Positions 38,851 to 53,963 of a stretch of 64,000 bases of DNA are shown piece after piece. Each line of letters begins with the position of its first letter. Positions within the stretch are counted from its first letter, which is position 1. Origin of the DNA: Fimbriosthenelais zetlandica (lineage: Eukaryota); NCBI GenBank assembly GCA_977030845.1, contig OZ365116.1, positions 2,294,001 through 2,358,000 of the forward strand, written 5' to 3'. The notes under the pieces were generated by a model. That model worked only from the letters and a program-made list of their open reading frames with translations. It was not told where the DNA came from and did not search any database. Made by a program: the position numbers and the translations under genes.

Positions 38851-39735
38851 TTAGCTATATTTGGTGAGTATAATAGGACCAGTGGAGACTGTCTGACAGC
38901 TAACATCAGCAGTCCTCAACCCCCCACTCCCCGGACCATGTGTTGACTGACCACTACTCCGTAACAACTGATCAAAATCACTCCCCGCATCACAACCATC
39001 ACTATCTAGTCTAGCAAGCTTATAACTGTTCAGTCTTATGTCAGTTCGCGCATGAACATAACTATAAACGTTTGGGCCTTCCATGGGCCACACTACTAAG
39101 GCCCTCCATTTAGGCAAACGGAACCGCTCTATGAAAGAGAGATTATCATTATCAGAGGGAAAGCTGTGAGGTACAGCAATGTAAGTCACTTGACTTCTGA
39201 CTTTTAACTTGTAGTCAAGATGGCATGTGCGACCTGGTTCAACAGGTATATGTACAGCCTCATCTGAGAAATATACGCGTTCACCACTTCCTAAAATATG
39301 ACCAGAATACCTTTCATCTTGTAAAGTGTCAATCTTCGTCACCACACCAACTGACGGAGCAGACTTCAGGCACACAGTCTCTGAGCTCACAGTAAAGATG
39401 TTGTACTTGTTCAGTAACATTCTGAGGTCAGTCTCTGATCGGAGAAACTGGCGACTTTTCGGTTGCTGAAAATGTAATTGTTCTAGAATCATCCGTAGAG
39501 ATGTTTCCTCAATCTGATGTAGGGAGAACGCTACATGTGCCAGAGTAGCATGCTCATCTTCAGGCTCAAATGTAGCAGTATCCACTGAAGGACTTGATGT
39601 ATTGTCATTTTCTGAGATTTCTCTGTTTGGAGTATTGCTTGTATCCAAAGAATCCAGCTCTGTATTAGTGCAGGCTGTAGACAATGACATGAAGGAAGGA
39701 CATCTGTCCTTGTCAGGTTCTACCTGCCCGTCCAT
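38851..39735 (-). CDS. Tandem truncated paralog of the 1561-aa gene (one winged-helix + one OB-like domain + CQT tail), 294 aa; may be a pseudogene
   Basis: aa 46-294 align to aa ~1325-1561 of the large ORF (HATLAHVAFSL...TGPIILTKYS). aa 24-43 align to aa 800-819 (NTELD...EISEN). DNA similarity runs about 25 nt past the stop. Confidence 0.75.
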   Translation of the reverse strand: MDGQVEPDKDRCPSFMSLSTACTNTELDSLDTSNTPNREISENDNTSSPSVDTATFEPEDEHATLAHVAFSLHQIEETSLRMILEQLHFQQPKSRQFLRSETDLRMLLNKYNIFTVSSETVCLKSAPSVGVVTKIDTLQDERYSGHILGSGERVYFSDEAVHIPVEPGRTCHLDYKLKVRSQVTYIAVPHSFPSDNDNLSFIERFRLPKWRALVVWPMEGPNVYSYVHARTDIRLNSYKLARLDSDGCDAGSDFDQLLRSSGQSTHGPGSGGLRTADVSCQTVSTGPIILTKYS

Positions 39736-41449: not shown

Positions 41450-44400
41450 TTAGCTATATTTGGTGAGTATAATAGGACCAGTGGAGACTGTCTGACAGCT
41501 AACATCAGCAGTCCTCGACCCCCCACTCCCCGGACCATGTGTTGACTGACCACTACTCCGTAACAACCGATCAAAATCACTCCCCCCATCACAACCACCA
41601 CCTACTGGTCTAGCAAGCTTTGAACTGTACAGTCTTAGACTTTTCCTAAAGACATGTGGACCTTCCATAGGCCACACAAGTAAGGCACATAAGTAAGGCA
41701 CATATCTCCAATTATCAACAAGAAACCAATGAGGTACGGCGATGTAACTCACTTGACTTTTGACTTTTAACTTGTAGTCAAGATGGCAGGTACGACCTGG
41801 TTCAACAGGTATATAGACAGACATATCAGTGAAATAGACCAACCCACCATGTCCTCTGATATATCCATGATACCTATCATCTGGTAGTGGGTTGATCCTT
41901 GTCACCTCCCCGACCAGCGGATCAGACTTCAGGCACACAGTCTCTGAGCTCACAGTAAAGATGTTGTACTTGTTCAGTAAGATTTTGAGCTCAGACTCAG
42001 TTCGGAGAAACTGGCGACTTTTCGGTTGCTGTACATGTAATTGTTCCAGAATCATCCGTAGAGATGTTTCCTCATTCTGATGTAGGGAGAACGCTACATG
42101 TGCCAGAGTAGCATGCTCATCTTCAGGCTCAAATGTACCAGTATCCACTGAAGGACTTGATGTAGTGACCTGAGATTGCTCAACTTGATGAACTTGATGA
42201 GGTCCTACTCCCTCCCGTTCAGTGCCTGTAGACATTTCCCCTGTAAGCACTGAAGGGCTTGATGTATTGATCTGAGGTTGCTGAACTTGATCAGGATCTA
42301 TTCCCTCCTGTTCAGTTTGCGTAGATAGTTCCCCTGTAAGCACTGAATTACGTGATGTAGATACCTGAGGTTGTTCTACTTGATGACTTTGATCAGGAAC
42401 TACTCCCTCCTGTTCAGTTTGCGTAGACATTTCCGCTGTAAGCTCTGAAGGGCTTGATGAAGTGACCTGAGATTGCTCAACTTGCTGAACTTGATGAGGT
42501 CCTACTCCCTCCCGTTCAGTTTGTGTAGACATTTCCCCTGTAAGCACTGAAGGGTTTGATGTATTGATCTGAGAGAGTTCTTGTAGCTTGGCTTGCTGAG
42601 CTAGATCAGGTCCTTCCTGTTCAGTTTGTGTAGACATTTCCTCTGTAAGCACTGAAGGATTTGATGTAGAGACCTGAGTTTTCTCTTGTAGCTTGGCTTG
42701 TTCAGCTTGATCAGGTCCCTCCTGTTCAGTTTGTGTAGACATTTCCCCTGTAAACACTGAAGGACTTGATGTAGTGACCTGAGTTTTCTCTTGTAGCTTG
42801 GCTTGCTGATCTTGATCAGGCTCAGTTTGTGTAGAACCTGTCCTTGTATCTCTCTGTGTATCATGAGTACACTGTAATGAGTAGGTGAGTAGCTGATGAT
42901 CGTACTCACTCATCCACGCTAACAGAGGGCGCCACTGGTCCTCCTCACTTCCTGTCACATGACGCTTCACCAACAAACACGTGACATGATCCCCCACATT
43001 GAGCACATTGATCATCTGACCCTTGGCTATATCCCTGCTGACCCTCACTCTGTCAGCTTTATCATAATAATACATCATCTTCCTACACAACATCAGACGT
43101 CCATAGCTGACACTGTCAATAGTGGCTGAATTCTTTGTCACAAACATGATCCGACCACTTGTACTCGTCCATTCAGAACAAATCGCTCTGTTCCCGGTCG
43201 TTTCCAGGCTATTGCCATCGTCAGTGAGTTGAAGCAGTAAGGGGTGTAAGCCTATATAGGCTTTACACATTGAAAGATTCGCTAAAGTCTGATTCAACAC
43301 TCGGGGAATGGCAGGGCTATTGGCCAGTGAATGTCTACTAACTGACAGCTGAGTGACAAGCTTTATCATTATCTTTGTGAGTAGGTAGAGGTCTGCTACT
43401 TCATTCAGAGTACATGTATTTGCCACTAGCGTTTCGGTTTTATATGATACAGGTTCTGTAGTGATCATATCATGTTCTAGAGCGCTATAAAAAGTGAGAG
43501 TGCTTGATGGACTGGATCCTCTGCTTGTTGAACCGCACATTTCATCTGAACATAATCCTTCTGATGCTATCATTGCTAGTTCCACCAAAGATGGTACTTT
43601 CTGATCAGTGTCAACTTCAATGTCATCATTGGTATCCAATCTCTGATCGCTGTGGGAAGTTGCCAAGCCAATAACGGCATTCTCTGATATTTCAGAGTTT
43701 GGAATACTGCTTACTTTAGGAGCATCCAACTCTGTATTTCCAGAAGGTGTTTTTTCATCCTTCACTGACCTTTCAATTAGAACTACCACAGCTCTACTCT
43801 TACTGGAGGTACAGTTGCCCACTTTTGGTAAACTGGAGATGGGCAAGTCGATATATTCAACTGAAGTGCCTACAGTCAGGACTGAAGGGTCCAGATCTTC
43901 CAACCCAAAGAAAACCTCAGTAGAAATATCTGACTTGATGAACCCATGATGTTTAAAAAGCATGGAGACAGTACCTCTCTTTTTTGTCGCAGCAAGGTAT
44001 ACTTTGTCATTTTGCACAGTAAATATATCCTTGTATAGTGTGACGAATGCTTGTACATCTGATGAAGACTCTATGAGGCCTCCTGAGATACTGGAGGGAC
44101 TCTCAATGAATCGCTGGTATATGTCCTTCACTGACATTGACTTGGTTTCCAGAAGGAGGAGTGAGAAGTACTTGAGAATGTTGACGTGAGCTAGTGTAAG
44201 GTCTGTCTCTAGTATGGTCTCCTTCCAGGGGTAGGTAGATATACGTATGTCTGGAGGACATATACCCTCCTCATATTTACCAGGAATTGAACCCTCCTCA
44301 TATTTACCAGGTTCCTGATGTACATTTGTATGTGTAAAAGTCCTTGATGACGAAGGTTTACAAACCAACAAACCTGTCTGCTTTTTTAGCTTGATTCCTA

Positions 44401-46135
44401 GAACTGTTTTCATCTGTGTTCTAGAAGTTGCTTTAATCTGCAGATTTTGTTGCGTGACCTTCTTGTCATAAATGATTTGGAATTTATCTCTTTTGTTTAA
44501 GAGGACCTTTATGATGCCTTCAGTACCAATGGCTTTAGCCAAGAGTTTCACCATTCCTGGTGAGTGCTGTATGTAACTGTGGATGTTTTGAACTTTAATA
44601 ATTGTTCTTTTGGCATCAAATTTCCCAGCGAAGAATTCACATGCCTCCTCTTTTGCCATAGCCACTGAACATACTAGGTTATCATCCAAACCAAATATTT
44701 CAGGATAGGCTTTTAAGAATTTAACTAAATTCCGTTTTCCAAGAAATTCTCTTATTGGTGTTGGTGCAGTGATTAATTTTCCTGTCAGGATTGGCAGGGA
44801 AATGATTTTGTCCGCTTCGATGTGTTTAATTAGAAACTCAATGGACAGATTCTCAATGGGAGGAGTGTCATTGCTAGTGACTTGATGCGTGGGATTGTTT
44901 TCCTTCTCCTCTACATCTCTCTCATGAATGTCACCAGGTTTGTCTGTGAGAGTTCTGTTACATGCCGCAGCTTCTGTTGTAACTGAGCTAATATCATCCT
45001 CAGTGTTGGCCGTTTCTGTCGTTTCCTGAAGACATTTTTTTTCTTCCTGTAGTTGTGAAGTAACCAAACCTTCTCTTGTAATTGCAAAGAGGCGAGGATG
45101 GTCACTAACAAACTGTACAGTACCCTTTGACTTGATGTATTTCTGAACGGGTGAAGGAGCATTGTTTAGCTCTTCATAAATCATATCAGTAGTTGTAGCG
45201 TCTTGGAGAATGTCCAGGACAAAGCAGACAGAATCTAGGATAACATTCCCACTGTTCCCAACCAAGCCTGAAGTTTGGTGAAGGCCATTACATAGAGTCA
45301 AAACTGATGAATACATCTCTTCAGAAACCAACCTGTATGGTTGTATCAAGCTGAAGAGTTCCTCCGTCAAAACATAGTCCGTCCCCTCTAATGTGGCTCT
45401 CACAAAGAGTTTAAATAGAAGGTCTCTTCTTATTGAGGTTAAAGACAACGAAATCTGGTCATCTGAATATTCATTAAAGAATTCTTGGATAATTATATTT
45501 ATTACGTCCCGAACGACTTGAGAGTCAGTCAGAGTAATCAAGGCTAGTTTATCAAGTACATACTCAGTGTGTAGGATAATTGTGTCAGTTTCTGACTCAA
45601 TTCCGTCATCTGCCATCGCTTCAAGAATGACTCTGTACATATGAAGGAGGATGGTACACGGTTGGTCAGCCAAGCCTGATGGTTGCGGTAACTTCTCCAC
45701 AAAGTGCCTCACCGTGAGATCCACTGCACCATTTGTATCAATGTAAAATATTTGTGGCCATTTTTTGAGGAATGTTGTAATCCTTCCAATGTTCTTGCTT
45801 GGTGGGCCCAGGACTTCATTGTCAGTTTCTGTGAGGTACTCTGTGAACTTGTCCACCTGGATAGTTCCATGTTTAGCGAGGACTCTGACAAAAACTCCAA
45901 TGGCGGAGTCATGAAATTCCTCATCTTGATTGACTAATGAGATCTGCCCAGCTCTAGTCACATGGAAGACACTGGGGTGTCTCTGTAGGAATCGTAGTAA
46001 CCCTGACTCATTCCTGCCCGCTTTACACCGTGATTCCTGGTCTAACTGAGACAAGTACCCAGCTAGATTCCTCACCAACACCGGCCCACGATCCACCAGC
46101 TTTTCCCGGAGGAAGGAAATGATTTTCTCCTCCAT
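41450..46135 (-). CDS. 1561-aa multidomain protein: Egalitarian-like winged-helix repeats + cold-shock/OB-like domains + TQT repeat region; single coding exon
   Basis: 4686-nt uninterrupted ORF; acceptor ctttttaatcttcAG 10 nt before the ATG. A repeated approx. 65-aa motif ends in FLxxHPxxFxV (aa ~1-68, 75-142, 298-360, 428-490, 495-560, 648-715, 912-978, 1340-1402). Beta-rich G-x-V/I...GF/YI...VFF/VYF segments occur at aa ~716-788, 988-1075 and 1405-1490. STQTE repeats span aa 1100-1305. Confidence 0.9.
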   Translation of the reverse strand: MEEKIISFLREKLVDRGPVLVRNLAGYLSQLDQESRCKAGRNESGLLRFLQRHPSVFHVTRAGQISLVNQDEEFHDSAIGVFVRVLAKHGTIQVDKFTEYLTETDNEVLGPPSKNIGRITTFLKKWPQIFYIDTNGAVDLTVRHFVEKLPQPSGLADQPCTILLHMYRVILEAMADDGIESETDTIILHTEYVLDKLALITLTDSQVVRDVINIIIQEFFNEYSDDQISLSLTSIRRDLLFKLFVRATLEGTDYVLTEELFSLIQPYRLVSEEMYSSVLTLCNGLHQTSGLVGNSGNVILDSVCFVLDILQDATTTDMIYEELNNAPSPVQKYIKSKGTVQFVSDHPRLFAITREGLVTSQLQEEKKCLQETTETANTEDDISSVTTEAAACNRTLTDKPGDIHERDVEEKENNPTHQVTSNDTPPIENLSIEFLIKHIEADKIISLPILTGKLITAPTPIREFLGKRNLVKFLKAYPEIFGLDDNLVCSVAMAKEEACEFFAGKFDAKRTIIKVQNIHSYIQHSPGMVKLLAKAIGTEGIIKVLLNKRDKFQIIYDKKVTQQNLQIKATSRTQMKTVLGIKLKKQTGLLVCKPSSSRTFTHTNVHQEPGKYEEGSIPGKYEEGICPPDIRISTYPWKETILETDLTLAHVNILKYFSLLLLETKSMSVKDIYQRFIESPSSISGGLIESSSDVQAFVTLYKDIFTVQNDKVYLAATKKRGTVSMLFKHHGFIKSDISTEVFFGLEDLDPSVLTVGTSVEYIDLPISSLPKVGNCTSSKSRAVVVLIERSVKDEKTPSGNTELDAPKVSSIPNSEISENAVIGLATSHSDQRLDTNDDIEVDTDQKVPSLVELAMIASEGLCSDEMCGSTSRGSSPSSTLTFYSALEHDMITTEPVSYKTETLVANTCTLNEVADLYLLTKIMIKLVTQLSVSRHSLANSPAIPRVLNQTLANLSMCKAYIGLHPLLLQLTDDGNSLETTGNRAICSEWTSTSGRIMFVTKNSATIDSVSYGRLMLCRKMMYYYDKADRVRVSRDIAKGQMINVLNVGDHVTCLLVKRHVTGSEEDQWRPLLAWMSEYDHQLLTYSLQCTHDTQRDTRTGSTQTEPDQDQQAKLQEKTQVTTSSPSVFTGEMSTQTEQEGPDQAEQAKLQEKTQVSTSNPSVLTEEMSTQTEQEGPDLAQQAKLQELSQINTSNPSVLTGEMSTQTEREGVGPHQVQQVEQSQVTSSSPSELTAEMSTQTEQEGVVPDQSHQVEQPQVSTSRNSVLTGELSTQTEQEGIDPDQVQQPQINTSSPSVLTGEMSTGTEREGVGPHQVHQVEQSQVTTSSPSVDTGTFEPEDEHATLAHVAFSLHQNEETSLRMILEQLHVQQPKSRQFLRTESELKILLNKYNIFTVSSETVCLKSDPLVGEVTRINPLPDDRYHGYIRGHGGLVYFTDMSVYIPVEPGRTCHLDYKLKVKSQVSYIAVPHWFLVDNWRYVPYLCALLVWPMEGPHVFRKSLRLYSSKLARPVGGGCDGGSDFDRLLRSSGQSTHGPGSGGSRTADVSCQTVSTGPIILTKYS

Positions 46136-47744
46136 TCTCTTGATTCTGAAGATTAAAAAGAGAATATTATGGACATTATATAGTGGTGTCTTTCTTAATG
46201 ATATTCTTCAATACATCAACACACCCACCTGCTTTAACAGCTATAGACCTACTTGAAGGAGATCCGTCCGTTTAACTAGATCCGAAACCACCAGACATAT
46301 GTACTGTGGTTTCGGATCAACTTAGAGTGAACAGACTAGCTAATATATGAGAGCTGATTCAGGTGTTTTAGTCTTATCAAACAATAGAACTGATATACCT
46401 AATCTATAATATTGACCCTGCATGTGGCTGACTCAACATATGACCTATCAATTAGTGATAGTTAGATAATACAAAGTCACAGTGCGCGTCAGTGCTTTTT
46501 TTCCTCCAATTCAAATTTAGGTCATTTAGGCCAAAATCTGGGCCATTGGTTAAACGAAAATGTTAATAGTCACCGCTTTTGGCCAGGTCACTGATTTAAA
46601 ACATCCTTTTAACCAATAGGCTTTAGGTATAATATTAATTGATAGGCGCTGTGTTTCAGCAAGGGAACCAGTTGTGGTGTCAGGAGGTTTCTTTGACCCT
46701 GGTACATCCCCCCGCCACTAGGTGGAGGCCGGGAGGCGGCGCCACACTCGATGTTTCACTTGTTTTTTCAGCTGATATGAAAAGTAATCCATAACAGGTC
46801 TATATAGTTCCGTGGTGGCTATAATATAATATAAGATATAGCAGTGGAGGGCGCTGATTTTGGAAAATGGGTGGGAGGGTCAGAGTGGGGCGTCCTGACT
46901 TTATGACACAAGAGAATAGTCTCGTTACCTCCTCTCTGGATCCCCCTATGGTTGACGTATAGCTTCCTTTTCCCCAGTAGGCCGCATTATGACGGTATCA
47001 GTATGTAGGCTCGTACACACCTTATCTCTCTACACTATCTCAGGTGTTTATACTATGTCCACTAATCTATTAGTCAGGTAACAGCAATGTATGACAAGCT
47101 TCTCATATCACTCAGATTGACATGAGGATCTATGATGAAGAATTTCTTCATAATTACACAATGATATCTTGTTTATAGATTGTTTTCATGGTTTATAAAA
47201 TGTTTACCACTTAATGAATGGGTCTGAGGGACCTGAAGTCCAGAGAATCCTACTTTACGGACAGAAACAACGTGACCACTTCTGACCAATCCCCTATAGC
47301 TGGTGGTCAATAATAGGGATGTTTGGATTATAATTTTTTTTTTTAGATATTCCTAAGTGAATGAACTGATAAGTAGCACTAGTAAGGACTAAAGCACTAA
47401 ATCTATAATAGCTAAGTTTATTTGGAATTGACAGAAATAAGTGTGTTGATTACCGGTGCATTTATTGGTGATTAATTTCCGGGTCTCATTATATCTTCTC
47501 CTAATCTGGCCATCTTGATGAGCTGGCGGTCCTTGATAAGACCGTGTATGTAAACATTGACCAAGTATCCGTGTGTCTATCTTATCATAACATGATCCTT
47601 GTATACAGTCAACACTTATAGACACTTGTACATAATGCATTCTCAACAATCTTACAGAGAATTAATTTAACTTAAGTTGTTTTTGGAAGGGAAGCAGGAT
47701 GAGATATGGAATAAAGAGAGAAAGATGGGGTGGGAGGGAGATAT

Positions 47745-48083: not shown

Positions 48084-48205
48084 GATGTTTTGAACTTTAA
48101 TAACTGTTCTTTTGGCATCAAATTTCCCAACGAAGAATTCACATACCTCCTCTTTTGCCATAGCCATTGAAAATACTATGTTACCATCCGAACCAAATAT
48201 TTCAG
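48084..48205 (-). pseudogene. 122-bp duplicated fragment of the winged-helix gene (copy of 44582-44703)
   Basis: Ungapped alignment with 8 mismatches in 122 nt, same orientation; translates EIFGSDGNIVFSMAMAKEEVCEFFVGKFDAKRTVIKVQNI. Confidence 0.9.
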
Positions 48206-51503: not shown

Positions 51504-52745
51504 TTACTTACAGTATAATAGGGAGATAGAGGGACAGGGACAGGGGATAGAGAGTGGGACAGGGAATGACAGTGACAGAGGAATAGAAAGAGAGATAGAG
51601 AATGACAGAGAAGGACAGACGCACAGTGTTATAGAGGGACAGGGATAGGGACTATCCGACAGGGATAACAATCGTTTAATAAAAGTTGAGCATTCAGAAT
51701 AGAAAGTGGGACTTGGTCATGGATCAAGTCTGACATCAGGGTATAGTGTCGTGATTACTGATCTCTCAACATAGCTGCAGGGCGCTCTGTTTCACAAAGA
51801 TGCGCTACATTCACTTATAGACCTATTATTGCCTAAAAGTCGTTATGAAACGCTCCCTAATGCATAAAAATAACGAGATAATCATGTGAAATATAAATCA
51901 TTTAAAACAGTCAGTAGAAATGATGACTGTTGAGCTGTGACTTTGTGTCAGACTACTCCAGTATCTATATATCATACGTCGGCGTATGTATCATTGTTTC
52001 TAGTCAGCTTATCAAAGTTTACTTTAGGATGAGAAAAAATGGATAAACTTGGAAATAAGAGGTCAGGCAGTGTAGACATACGCACATGCTGACCACTGAG
52101 TGTGTGTGTGTGTGTGTGTGTGAGGGGGGGTGGGTGGGGGGGGGGGGGTGATTGTGAACCAGGATCTAGTCCGAGCTTTCACCATCAAGATGGATAATCT
52201 TTCTAGAACATTCTTTAATACTTCTGTTGAATGAAGAATGCATGTTTCCCATATTCCATTACCAACTACTAAGCAATTACTGCGATTATATTATAGAAAG
52301 ATATTGGAAATTAGACGACTATTTTTATGCTGCATGTATTTGCGTGGGGGCATGTAAGGTTCTGGACTTCTTGGAATCATTTTAGAAATTGAATGTACTT
52401 TTAGTTTCATGGTAAAGTGTGGTTAAGCCATGTTTGTGAGCCGTGCCTCCTTCTATGTCAGGGTCAGACCTATAATTCATTATATTCCCTCATACAGCTG
52501 ATGGTTTACATATGTGAGGGCAGGCATGCATTATATCGTAGTTTGTAGGCCACTTTTACAAGGAATAGCCCCCCTCTGAGGAATAATTTCAATAATTGAC
52601 ATTTTAAGTTCAACTATATTATCTAGGCTACACATATCGGCCTTTGTAAGTAGGATCACATTTCAATCTAAGATTAGACACGACTGATAAACATTTTTTG
52701 ATAATTTTTGTTGTAAATTCTTTCAGATTTAAAGTGACAATCAAC

Positions 52746-53963
52746 ATGGATTCTTCAATCCAACAGGTGACCTTTAGTGTTGATTATTTCACCACGGGGG
52801 CGCCACCTGTCATGAACCAACCACGTGCTAACATTGACTATGTGGGCTACGTCTTCATACCTCTCTTCCTCTTTTTTGGAGTAACTGGAAACGTTTTGAC
52901 CATCATTGTCATGCGGTCCAAGATTTTCAAACATTTCCCCTCGAGTTATGTTCTTATATGTCTCGCCTTCTCAGACACGGTGCTTAATGTGCTCCTACCC
53001 CTCAACAAGAAGTGGGTGAGAGACTTGTTGACCACCGACATTAGGAGTTATACGCTGGCTGGTTGCCAGGCCTTCTTCTGGGCGTTCAGGACAGCCAAGA
53101 TGACGTCATCATGGCTGGTGGTGCTCATCTGTATTGAGCGTTTTGTAGCTGTCTGTTTCCCTATGAGAGCCGCCTACCTTAACACCAAGAGGAACGCTGT
53201 GATCGGGATATTCCTGGTGTACTCCGTCATAGGCACGTATAACGGAGTCTGGGTGACATTCGCTGATCGTTTAGTTAACGGGACATGCTTCCCTAACACT
53301 AAACCGGAAGGACTAGCCCACGTGACCGGGAACTTCCTGATCGTGGGTCTCAGTATCTACTCCTTCATCCCGTGTGTTATTCTCATCGTATGTACGGCGT
53401 GTATCATATATAATTTATATAAATCACGCCGTGCTAGGCGTAGTATGATTGTTAACAGCCAGGCGTATGACGACCCAACCTCTAAAACCACAGCCATGTT
53501 ACTGTGTATCATCGTGGCATTCATCCTCCTCGTCCTCCCCATCACATTTGCCCACCTTATCAGCTTCATTATGAGCCAGCCCCTGTTTGAATCTAAGGAG
53601 CCAGGTATCGTGCTATACAGGGAGGTGTCACAGGTACTGGAGCACATGAATTACTCTATTAACTTTGTCCTCTATGTGCTGGCCTGCCCCAGCTTCAGGA
53701 ACCAACTCCCGGTCGTTCTCTGCTGCTTTAAAAAGAAGGAAAAGCAGGAGAAGCAAGCGATGCAGAACAGTAATGAGTCAGACCGGAGTAATCAGACGAA
53801 CAGAACTGATGTTAGTTCACGGAGAAGTTCAGCGTCTAGTCTACAGATCCATCATGTACAACCGATAGGTTCTCCTCTCAAAGTACACGCCACAAACATG
53901 CACAGTCTGAACGACTCACAGTACAGTAAAACCCCCACAAACATGCACAGTCAGAACGACTGA
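52746..53963 (+). CDS. Rhodopsin-like (class A) GPCR, invertebrate peptide-receptor-like (FMRFamide-receptor-like expansion type), single coding exon
   Basis: Seven hydrophobic segments: TM1 GVTGN, TM2 LAFSD, TM3 CIERFVAVCFP (ERF for DRY), TM6 AFILLVLP, TM7 NYSINFVLY. Acceptor ttctttcAG at 52725-52726 precedes the ATG at 52746, so the supplied 52698 start is intronic. Confidence 0.93.
   Translation: MDSSIQQVTFSVDYFTTGAPPVMNQPRANIDYVGYVFIPLFLFFGVTGNVLTIIVMRSKIFKHFPSSYVLICLAFSDTVLNVLLPLNKKWVRDLLTTDIRSYTLAGCQAFFWAFRTAKMTSSWLVVLICIERFVAVCFPMRAAYLNTKRNAVIGIFLVYSVIGTYNGVWVTFADRLVNGTCFPNTKPEGLAHVTGNFLIVGLSIYSFIPCVILIVCTACIIYNLYKSRRARRSMIVNSQAYDDPTSKTTAMLLCIIVAFILLVLPITFAHLISFIMSQPLFESKEPGIVLYREVSQVLEHMNYSINFVLYVLACPSFRNQLPVVLCCFKKKEKQEKQAMQNSNESDRSNQTNRTDVSSRRSSASSLQIHHVQPIGSPLKVHATNMHSLNDSQYSKTPTNMHSQND

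Follow-up and report, generated by a model that had tools for sequence, protein, structure and literature searches.

A giant and divergent Egalitarian-related protein pairing winged-helix with cold-shock-type domains in Fimbriosthenelais zetlandica

What kind of protein is specified by a 1561-amino-acid open reading frame (ORF) in Fimbriosthenelais zetlandica, and what might such a protein do? The gene lies in a stretch of 64,000 nucleotides that we refer to as the window (contig OZ365116.1 of assembly GCA_977030845.1, positions 2,294,001 to 2,358,000 of the forward strand), and a sequence-only reading of this stretch had likened its repeats to those of Egalitarian (Egl) and suggested a new RNA-cargo adaptor. 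Egl is the best-understood adaptor joining specific mRNAs to dynein, is known mainly from work on flies, and is customarily defined by an exonuclease-like domain. We propose, with a probability of roughly 60%, that the gene encodes a giant and divergent member of the Egl superfamily, which would act as an LC8-dimerised, multivalent RNA-binding scaffold. Our comparisons establish the identities and order of its domains, homology to Egl at both ends of the chain, and conservation of this arrangement in other species.

The repeats are winged-helix (WH) domains of Egl type. The Pfam-A family WH_Egal (PF23713, ‘Egalitarian winged helix domain’) matches the whole protein at E 9.8e-35 in four stretches, whose limits and individual E-values are given in Table 1. 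Two further regions (aa ~300-365 and 499-577) cross-match other WH copies at E 1e-7 to 1e-12 in iterated profiles derived from this protein and related sequences, and aa 912-985 and 1337-1404 were assigned as WH through module homology and structure models. The total is eight, four Pfam-significant copies and four more divergent ones from profile and structure methods, in agreement with the approximately eight repeats counted in the earlier reading. One or two further degenerate copies may lie in the helical region at aa 142-299, the counterpart of which in the related protein P0001 gives a faint wHTH_TTC3 match. When the whole protein was compared with the PDB by phmmer, only a chance match was obtained (E 0.94), and matches required sub-regions or profiles: WH1-2 compared with all PDB sequences retrieved Drosophila Egl (9RVY series, E 3.3e-5), and the predicted WH8 (model residues 1-70) superimposed by VIA-align on Egl ED1 (9rvy_C) with a Z-score of 10.6, a root-mean-square deviation of 1.9 Å and 24% identity. 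The Egl repeat pattern quoted in the earlier reading fits Egl residues 116-159 in the phmmer alignment. Helix 2 of WH1 (VRNLAGYLSQ) resembles that of Egl ED2 (VRSLLGHRSQ), and its G26 and S29 align to Egl G124 and S127, the site at which ED2 helix 2 enters the RNA minor groove in a 2026 cryo-EM study (PMC13186709).

A second tie to Egl is found at the opposite end of the chain. Within its last ~15 residues the protein carries the motif CQTVSTG followed by I-I-x-T-x-Y, and the same tail stands at the extreme C-terminus of a neighbouring mini-paralog, of the related proteins P0001 and P0003, and of seven other WH_Egal proteins recovered in the search of cluster representatives. The Q, both T residues and the G are invariant in all ten sequences of the tail alignment (A2). 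A profile of this alignment, compared with all PDB sequences, gave Egl 960-977 as its sole meaningful match (E 0.0043; the other row had E 6.9), with Egl SQTLSTG aligned to the CQTVSTG core and Egl S965 and S969 falling on the aligned C/S-Q-T-x-S. The double substitution of these residues in Egl_2pt (S965K, S969R) abolished both Dlc binding and Egl dimerisation (bioRxiv 10.1101/550277), and the DLC-binding site was placed at the Egl C-terminus by the cryo-EM study (PMC13186709). Given that it sits at the very end of the chain, is conserved and accompanies Egl-type WH domains, the peptide is most simply read as homologous to the Dlc/LC8-binding site of Egl. Such homology would therefore make the protein a true member of the Egl superfamily, beyond the possession of Egl-like repeats.

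The domain by which Egl is usually recognized is missing. No DEDD or 3'-5' exonuclease family was matched at Pfam E<=1, either with the whole protein or with nine segments of it, and WH-cold-shock domain (CSD) modules occupy the equivalent positions. The earlier statement that no DEDD exonuclease domain is present thus agrees with the Pfam scans. From this absence the earlier reading had concluded that the protein is not an Egl/EXD1 ortholog; the C-terminal LC8-site homology, which had been overlooked, places the protein closer to Egl than had been claimed.

What takes the place of the exonuclease domain is a set of beta-barrels, each paired with a winged helix. A jackhmmer search seeded with aa 1340-1500 defined a module of ~160 aa, composed of a WH and a beta-rich half, with copies at aa 652-786 and 1340-1500 of the main protein, in the mini-paralog, four times in P0001 and twice in P0003 (alignment A1); GFI/GYI and VFF/VYF motifs are conserved across these modules. 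The A1 profile compared with PDB sequences returned almost only cold-shock domains, with Unr first (E 0.0017), followed by YB-1, YBX2, CSDE1 and a bacterial Csp; the matches to Unr and YB-1 have E 0.002-0.1, and every one of these matches aligns on the GFI...VFF strands. An AlphaFold2 (AF2) model of aa 1335-1505 built from A1 (pLDDT 81, pTM 0.74) consists of three helices and a wing, followed by five strands (residues 73-83, 87-94, 97-102, 127-134 and 148-155 in model numbering). By VIA-align, the barrel of this model (CSD3, model residues 70-157) has as its top 50 matches nearly all CSDs, including Bc-Csp (Z 9.4), CspA (9.1), CspB (9.0), Unr CSD1 (9.0), YB-1 (8.5) and Lin28B (7.8). For a more divergent variant, module B (aa 895-1095), homology to module A was established by hhalign (149 columns across the WH and barrel halves; probability 95.5%, E 1.5e-8), and its modelled barrel matches Unr CSD1 (Z 8.4), Lin28B (7.9) and CspB (7.7), the CSD matches including YB-1 spanning Z 7.6-8.4. 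The barrel of module B used alone in jackhmmer found only P0001, and the whole module was required for the hhalign comparison. A five-stranded OB barrel of CSD topology is thus present in the predicted models of CSD3 and module B, and on profile and model evidence the barrels are putatively highly divergent CSDs. The beta-rich segments that had been noticed after the last three WH copies (WH6, WH7 and WH8) are accordingly borne out as OB folds of cold-shock type by the A1 profile, AF2, VIA-align and hhalign.

The same order of parts recurs in other species. An exhaustive phmmer search, in which 1.84 billion cluster representatives were compared with aa 1-1080, yielded only 16 matches at E<=1e-3. 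Among them are P0001 (2386 aa), P0003 (1459 aa) and the fragment P0002, which are 27-31% identical to the main protein with the same part order; P0001 and P0003 are unnamed proteins from ENA and Logan assemblies. They share with the main protein the succession of WH1-WH2, the helical region, WH3-5, WH-CSD modules, module B, a repeat-rich linker, a last WH-CSD module and the tail. The number of type-A modules is four in P0001 and two in P0003, as in the main protein. Directly after WH5, P0001 (aa 532-590) and P0003 (aa 460-517) carry an extra OB-like segment (mutual BLASTP E 8e-8), of which no counterpart was detectable in aa 556-650 of the main protein. A short form of ~450-650 aa (P0008, P0010, P0013, P0015 and P0016), uncharacterised and found in many invertebrate entries, carries WH_Egal domains in three copies, with a single CSD-like barrel behind the last of them and, as in the main protein, the CQT.STG.I..T..Y tail at its end. 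Its ED1-ED2 region is much closer to Egl (P0008 matches this part of Egl at E 5e-22 and has a tail alignable to Egl 962-981); the main protein is far more divergent, with its WH domains and WH-CSD modules multiplied. In the AFDB, the clusters matching a whole WH-CSD module include entries auto-named ‘Egal-1 winged helix domain-containing protein’ (e.g. A0A267FTJ6 and A0A7I8VGF4). The architecture is therefore not lineage-specific, as had been suggested it might be, given the giant form in two other species and the short form in many invertebrate entries. It was rightly called unrecognised: no characterised protein of matching build was found in the PDB, in Pfam or in our literature search, which also held no paper pairing Egalitarian with a cold-shock domain. 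Word-indexed searches with the whole protein, with region 1340-1561 and with a three-sequence alignment returned no matches, a result that is uninformative on distribution because low-complexity words probably swamped them.

Other WH_Egal proteins deserve mention in their own right. Amphioxus (Branchiostoma) proteins P0004, P0005, P0006 and P0014 combine five to nine WH_Egal domains with a C-terminal AAA ATPase (Spore_III_AA/AAA_22) and end in a different tail with no LC8-type peptide; to judge from their domain matches, they represent another uncharacterised architecture built on Egl domains. P0007 (1142 aa) has WH_Egal domains, C-terminal barrel-like segments and two CQT motifs near its end, the last of them in the conserved tail context.

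These comparisons suggest that the conserved core of the superfamily consists of N-terminal Egl-type winged helices and a C-terminal LC8-docking peptide, and that the RNA-binding middle is exchangeable: ExoHD-XAD in Egl, one CSD in the short form and a series of WH-CSD modules in the main protein. With Egl (PDB 9RVY) and its C. elegans counterpart EGAL-1, the protein shares the N-terminal Egl-type WH domains with an ED2-like helix 2 in WH1, the C-terminal S/C-Q-T-x-S-T-G peptide at the Dlc/LC8 site, and the arrangement of folded domains on disordered linkers. Unlike Egl, it lacks ExoHD-XAD, has eight WH domains in place of three, contains three cold-shock barrels and is ~1.5 times longer.

By analogy with Egl ED1 and ED2, the WH domains might bind structured RNA; in Egl, WH helix 2 inserts into the minor grooves of double-stranded RNA (dsRNA) (PMC13186709). 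The CSDs could bind single-stranded RNA (ssRNA) through their GFI/VFF-type strands, as is typical of the domains they resemble. LC8 would then dock on the C-terminal peptide and dimerise the chain, as it does in Egl, which must dimerise before it can bind RNA efficiently in vivo (bioRxiv 10.1101/550277). Multivalent RNA binding combined with LC8 dimerisation would thus yield a scaffold that gathers structured mRNAs into a ribonucleoprotein (RNP). If confirmed, this would single out specific proteins as candidate mRNA adaptors of Egl type in animals of other lineages, and would offer a natural system in which to study how dsRNA-reading winged helices cooperate with ssRNA-reading cold-shock domains.

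Several observations weigh against this proposal. Egl H31 and C35, base-contacting residues of ED1, correspond to R22 and G26 in WH1 and are not conserved; therefore, neither BicD binding nor binding of the ED1 type can be assumed. Egl binds BicD through ED1 (PMC13186709), and WH1 is more ED2-like than ED1-like. The tail match to Egl is short, covering 18 residues with a domain i-Evalue of 0.11 next to the whole-sequence E of 0.0043. The giant type is represented by only three proteins among the 1.84 billion cluster representatives searched by phmmer. For the barrels, the Pfam CSD family (PF00313) had no match on the main protein in a segment scan; on a barrel copy of P0001 it scored 16.5-20.4 bits, below the cut-off of 27, and apart from this sub-threshold match no OB family was found by Pfam on isolated homolog barrels. 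Foldseek against the PDB and Swiss-Prot models returned OB folds only, at E >=3e-3, which is a call of fold and not of family; the family was then resolved by VIA-align. The alignments underlying the AF2 models were shallow, with 9 and 6 sequences, and the model of module B is of low confidence (pLDDT 55) and was used as support only.

The most conspicuous feature of the linker between module B and the last WH-CSD module is an array of TQT motifs, which had been put forward as an LC8 array. Six TQT motifs (T at aa 1102, 1134, 1169, 1204, 1238 and 1272) and one degenerate TGT lie within aa 1099-1314, and the motif makes LC8 binding plausible: the 8-mer GEMSTQTE is similar to AEFSTQTP, a validated binder in Bassoon, and the upstream RTGSTQTE to the optimal VSRGTQTE. 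Five of the 12 STQT peptides tested in one study did not bind LC8 (PMC6607443, Table 1). Repeated TQT-anchored 8-mers in a disordered region are shared with multivalent LC8 clients such as ASCIZ, Chica/SPAG5, Nup159, Bassoon and KANK1; unlike in these clients, the motifs are spaced ~34-35 aa apart, form a young minisatellite and are absent from the homologs. Five of the six TQT motifs and the TGT sit in 34-35-aa units, which form a 102-105-bp tandem repeat with 79-89% nucleotide identity. The ratio of nonsynonymous to synonymous differences (pN/pS) among the units is 0.93 in the core and 1.16 in the flank and linker, one unit has already changed to TGT, and the array is absent from P0001 and P0003. 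The array is thus a young minisatellite with no sign of constraint. Because the copies are tandem units with pN/pS near 1 that are missing from the homologs, they do not count as independent evidence for LC8 binding. Several TQT-anchored motifs in a disordered region are indeed there, as had been claimed, but as an LC8 array they find no evolutionary support. The odds that at least some of the units bind LC8 are roughly even, and the conserved C-terminal site is the better-supported predicted contact. In P0001, the linker at aa ~1700-1800 (locus L001) contains an unrelated tandem repeat of ~18 aa (GPVGPGSGQSSH-D/N-KQQTA) in ~6 copies, and repeats seem to expand readily at this place in different lineages.

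The most serious competitor, although on the unlikely side, has the protein regulate translation in the cytoplasm after the manner of Unr/CSDE1 or LIN-66. The CSDs would then hold mRNAs and bring in translation or microRNA-induced silencing complex (miRISC) factors; the winged helices would play an accessory part, and LC8 would serve as a dimerisation clamp only, with no motor link. The barrels are indeed closest to the CSDs of Unr, YB-1 and Lin28, and most of what LC8 does is independent of dynein (PMC6607443). Unr/CSDE1 likewise strings several cold-shock barrels on one polypeptide (structural match Z 8.3-9.0), but Unr has five canonical and four non-canonical CSDs and no WH, whereas every CSD of the main protein is paired with a WH. 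LIN-66 of C. elegans, a cytoplasmic post-transcriptional regulator that acts with eIF3g and miRISC, shares the combination of a cold-shock domain with a winged helix of its own family (PF26288) and low-complexity regions, and a Lin-66-like WH cluster takes second place in the ESM Atlas (score 0.77), which we treat as a lead only. However, LIN-66 has one CSD where the main protein has three, no match to Pfam WHD_lin-66 was obtained at E<=1, and the likeness is at the level of domain composition. The LIN-66 literature turned up no homologs outside nematodes, and dynein, DLC-1 and Egalitarian are not mentioned in the LIN-66 paper that was searched for those terms. Also against a translational regulator, the resemblance of both the winged helices and the C-terminal peptide is to Egl specifically, and WH domains outnumber CSDs by 8:3.

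A bolder form of the Egl-superfamily proposal, and a distinctly doubtful one, would have Egl-type proteins in which CSDs replace ExoHD-XAD constitute an unrecognised and widespread branch, comprising the short form (ED1-3, CSD and LC8 tail) and the giant form. Its members might act as BicD/dynein-linked mRNA-localisation adaptors in animals lacking canonical Egl, and the giant form might read combined ds/ssRNA signals through its WH-CSD modules.

We give little credence to the notion of a germ-granule or nuage scaffold, in which LOTUS-like WH domains would have DEAD-box helicases (Vasa, for example) as their main partners instead of RNA, on the model of Oskar, TDRD5/7 and MARF1. MARF1 has about eight LOTUS copies, a point in its favour. 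So are the close resemblance of Egl domains to LOTUS domains (PMC13186709), the top shape match in the ESM Atlas, which is a NYN/OST-HTH/LOTUS protein (TM-score 0.52), and the long disordered repeat linkers of the main protein. However, Pfam OST-HTH (PF12872) had no match at E<=1, leaving the LOTUS resemblance at the level of fold, and the best structural match is Egl ED1, a dsRNA binder.

The gene has local company. A tandem mini-paralog of 294 aa contains one WH-CSD module and the same tail, and is 73% identical in amino acids to the last WH-CSD module and tail of the main gene, with 82% nucleotide identity over 798 bp. Synonymous divergence (dS) between the two is mosaic: the WH region has a dS of 0.05 and the tail one of 0, against 0.71 for the CSD, where the dN/dS ratio (omega) is 0.35. 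This pattern is consistent with an old duplication whose flanks were later homogenised by gene conversion, and the CSD3 region is under purifying selection. That positive selection drove the two copies apart in the OB was ruled out, since dS there is also high (0.71) and mosaic gene conversion fits. A 122-bp relic, 93% identical to 44582-44703 (aa 479-518, WH4/WH5 coding sequence), stands isolated ~2 kb upstream of the main gene without a surrounding ORF. That the locus is instead a cluster of fast-evolving duplicates, perhaps unexpressed or in decay, with an intact but functionally unimportant ORF could be argued from the partial tandem duplicate and the relic flanking the gene, TQT units with pN/pS near 1, the absence from the main protein of the OB after WH5, an overall omega of 0.55 between the local copies and the failure of word-indexed searches to return the protein from a collection of 5.8 billion, but is very improbable, given that 4.7 kb is not kept open by chance at 41% GC, that domain order, start codon and tail are shared with two other species at 27-31% identity, and that omega in the CSD3 region is 0.35.

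The start of the coding sequence is likewise shared. The G+C content of the window is ~41%, at which an open frame of 4.7 kb cannot be due to chance. The last in-frame stop lies 24 codons upstream of the ATG, and the start methionine aligns with the start of P0001, P0002 and P0003; upstream coding exons were ruled out by this collinearity with three homologs. The P0001 and P0003 loci each contain one single ORF in a single coding exon. A polypyrimidine-AG acceptor-like site lies 10 nt upstream of the main-gene ATG, and corresponding sites are found 9 nt upstream of the ATG in both homologous loci (L001 2975-3000; L002 455-475). An intron in the 5' untranslated region is therefore likely, and a structure with an acceptor just before the ATG and an uninterrupted coding sequence appears to be conserved in three species. 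The description of the gene as an intronless 1561-aa ORF holds for the uninterrupted coding sequence, but ‘single coding exon’ is more accurate than ‘intronless’ in view of the acceptor-like site. A transposon or viral origin was ruled out, as Pfam scans of the whole protein and its segments revealed no such domains.

Table 1. Positions of the gene, its encoded parts and related elements, in window coordinates.
Feature	Position	Strand	Details
Complete coding sequence	41450..46135	-	1561 aa and stop; ATG start; single coding exon
Polypyrimidine-AG acceptor-like site	46136..46160	-	10 nt upstream of ATG
WH1	45920..46126	-	aa 4-72; Pfam WH_Egal E 1e-12 (aa 4-69); phmmer vs Egl in PDB E 3.3e-5
WH2	45713..45913	-	aa 75-141; Pfam WH_Egal E 2e-4 (aa 78-135), under gathering score in an isolated scan; self-built hidden Markov model (self-HMM)
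Conserved helical region, possibly degenerate WH	45239..45712	-	aa 142-299; collinear with P0002 141-370 and P0003 149-369
WH3, divergent	45041..45238	-	aa ~300-365; profile cross-matches to WH1, WH4, WH5; weak self-HMM match
WH4	44648..44845	-	aa 431-496; Pfam WH_Egal E 4.5e-9 (aa 432-491)
WH5, divergent	44441..44641	-	aa 499-565; profile E 1.6e-11; orthologous to P0001 367-432 and P0003 365-431
WH6 (WH half of WH-CSD module 1)	43976..44188	-	aa 650-720; Pfam WH_Egal E 2.4e-5 (aa 653-715); alignment A1
CSD1	43766..43975	-	aa 721-790; barrel of cold-shock-like type; GFI and VFF motifs; member of A1
WH7 (WH half of variant module B)	43181..43402	-	aa 912-985; hhalign; AF2 topology WH-like, pLDDT <50
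CSD2	42899..43180	-	aa 986-1079; hhalign; VIA-align of low-confidence model
Disordered TQT linker	42194..42841	-	six TQT and one degenerate TGT; tandem 102-105-bp units
WH8	41924..42127	-	aa 1337-1404; AF2 pLDDT ~90; VIA-align to Egl ED1 (9rvy_C)
CSD3	41663..41923	-	aa 1405-1491; predicted five-stranded barrel with GYI and VYF motifs; AF2, VIA-align, Foldseek
Conserved C-terminal peptide	41453..41515	-	aa 1541-1561; core C1547-Q-T-V-S-T-G1553; alignment A2
Tandem mini-paralog	38851..39735	-	294 aa; one WH-CSD module and same tail; no TQT array
122-bp relic	48084..48205	-	93% identical to 44582-44703

Elsewhere in the window, positions 52698-53963 on the plus strand hold an uninterrupted ORF of 421 aa for a rhodopsin-type G-protein-coupled receptor, the nearest ESM Atlas clusters of which are labelled ‘FMRFamide receptor-like’ and ‘CX3C chemokine receptor 1-like’ and are mostly molluscan.

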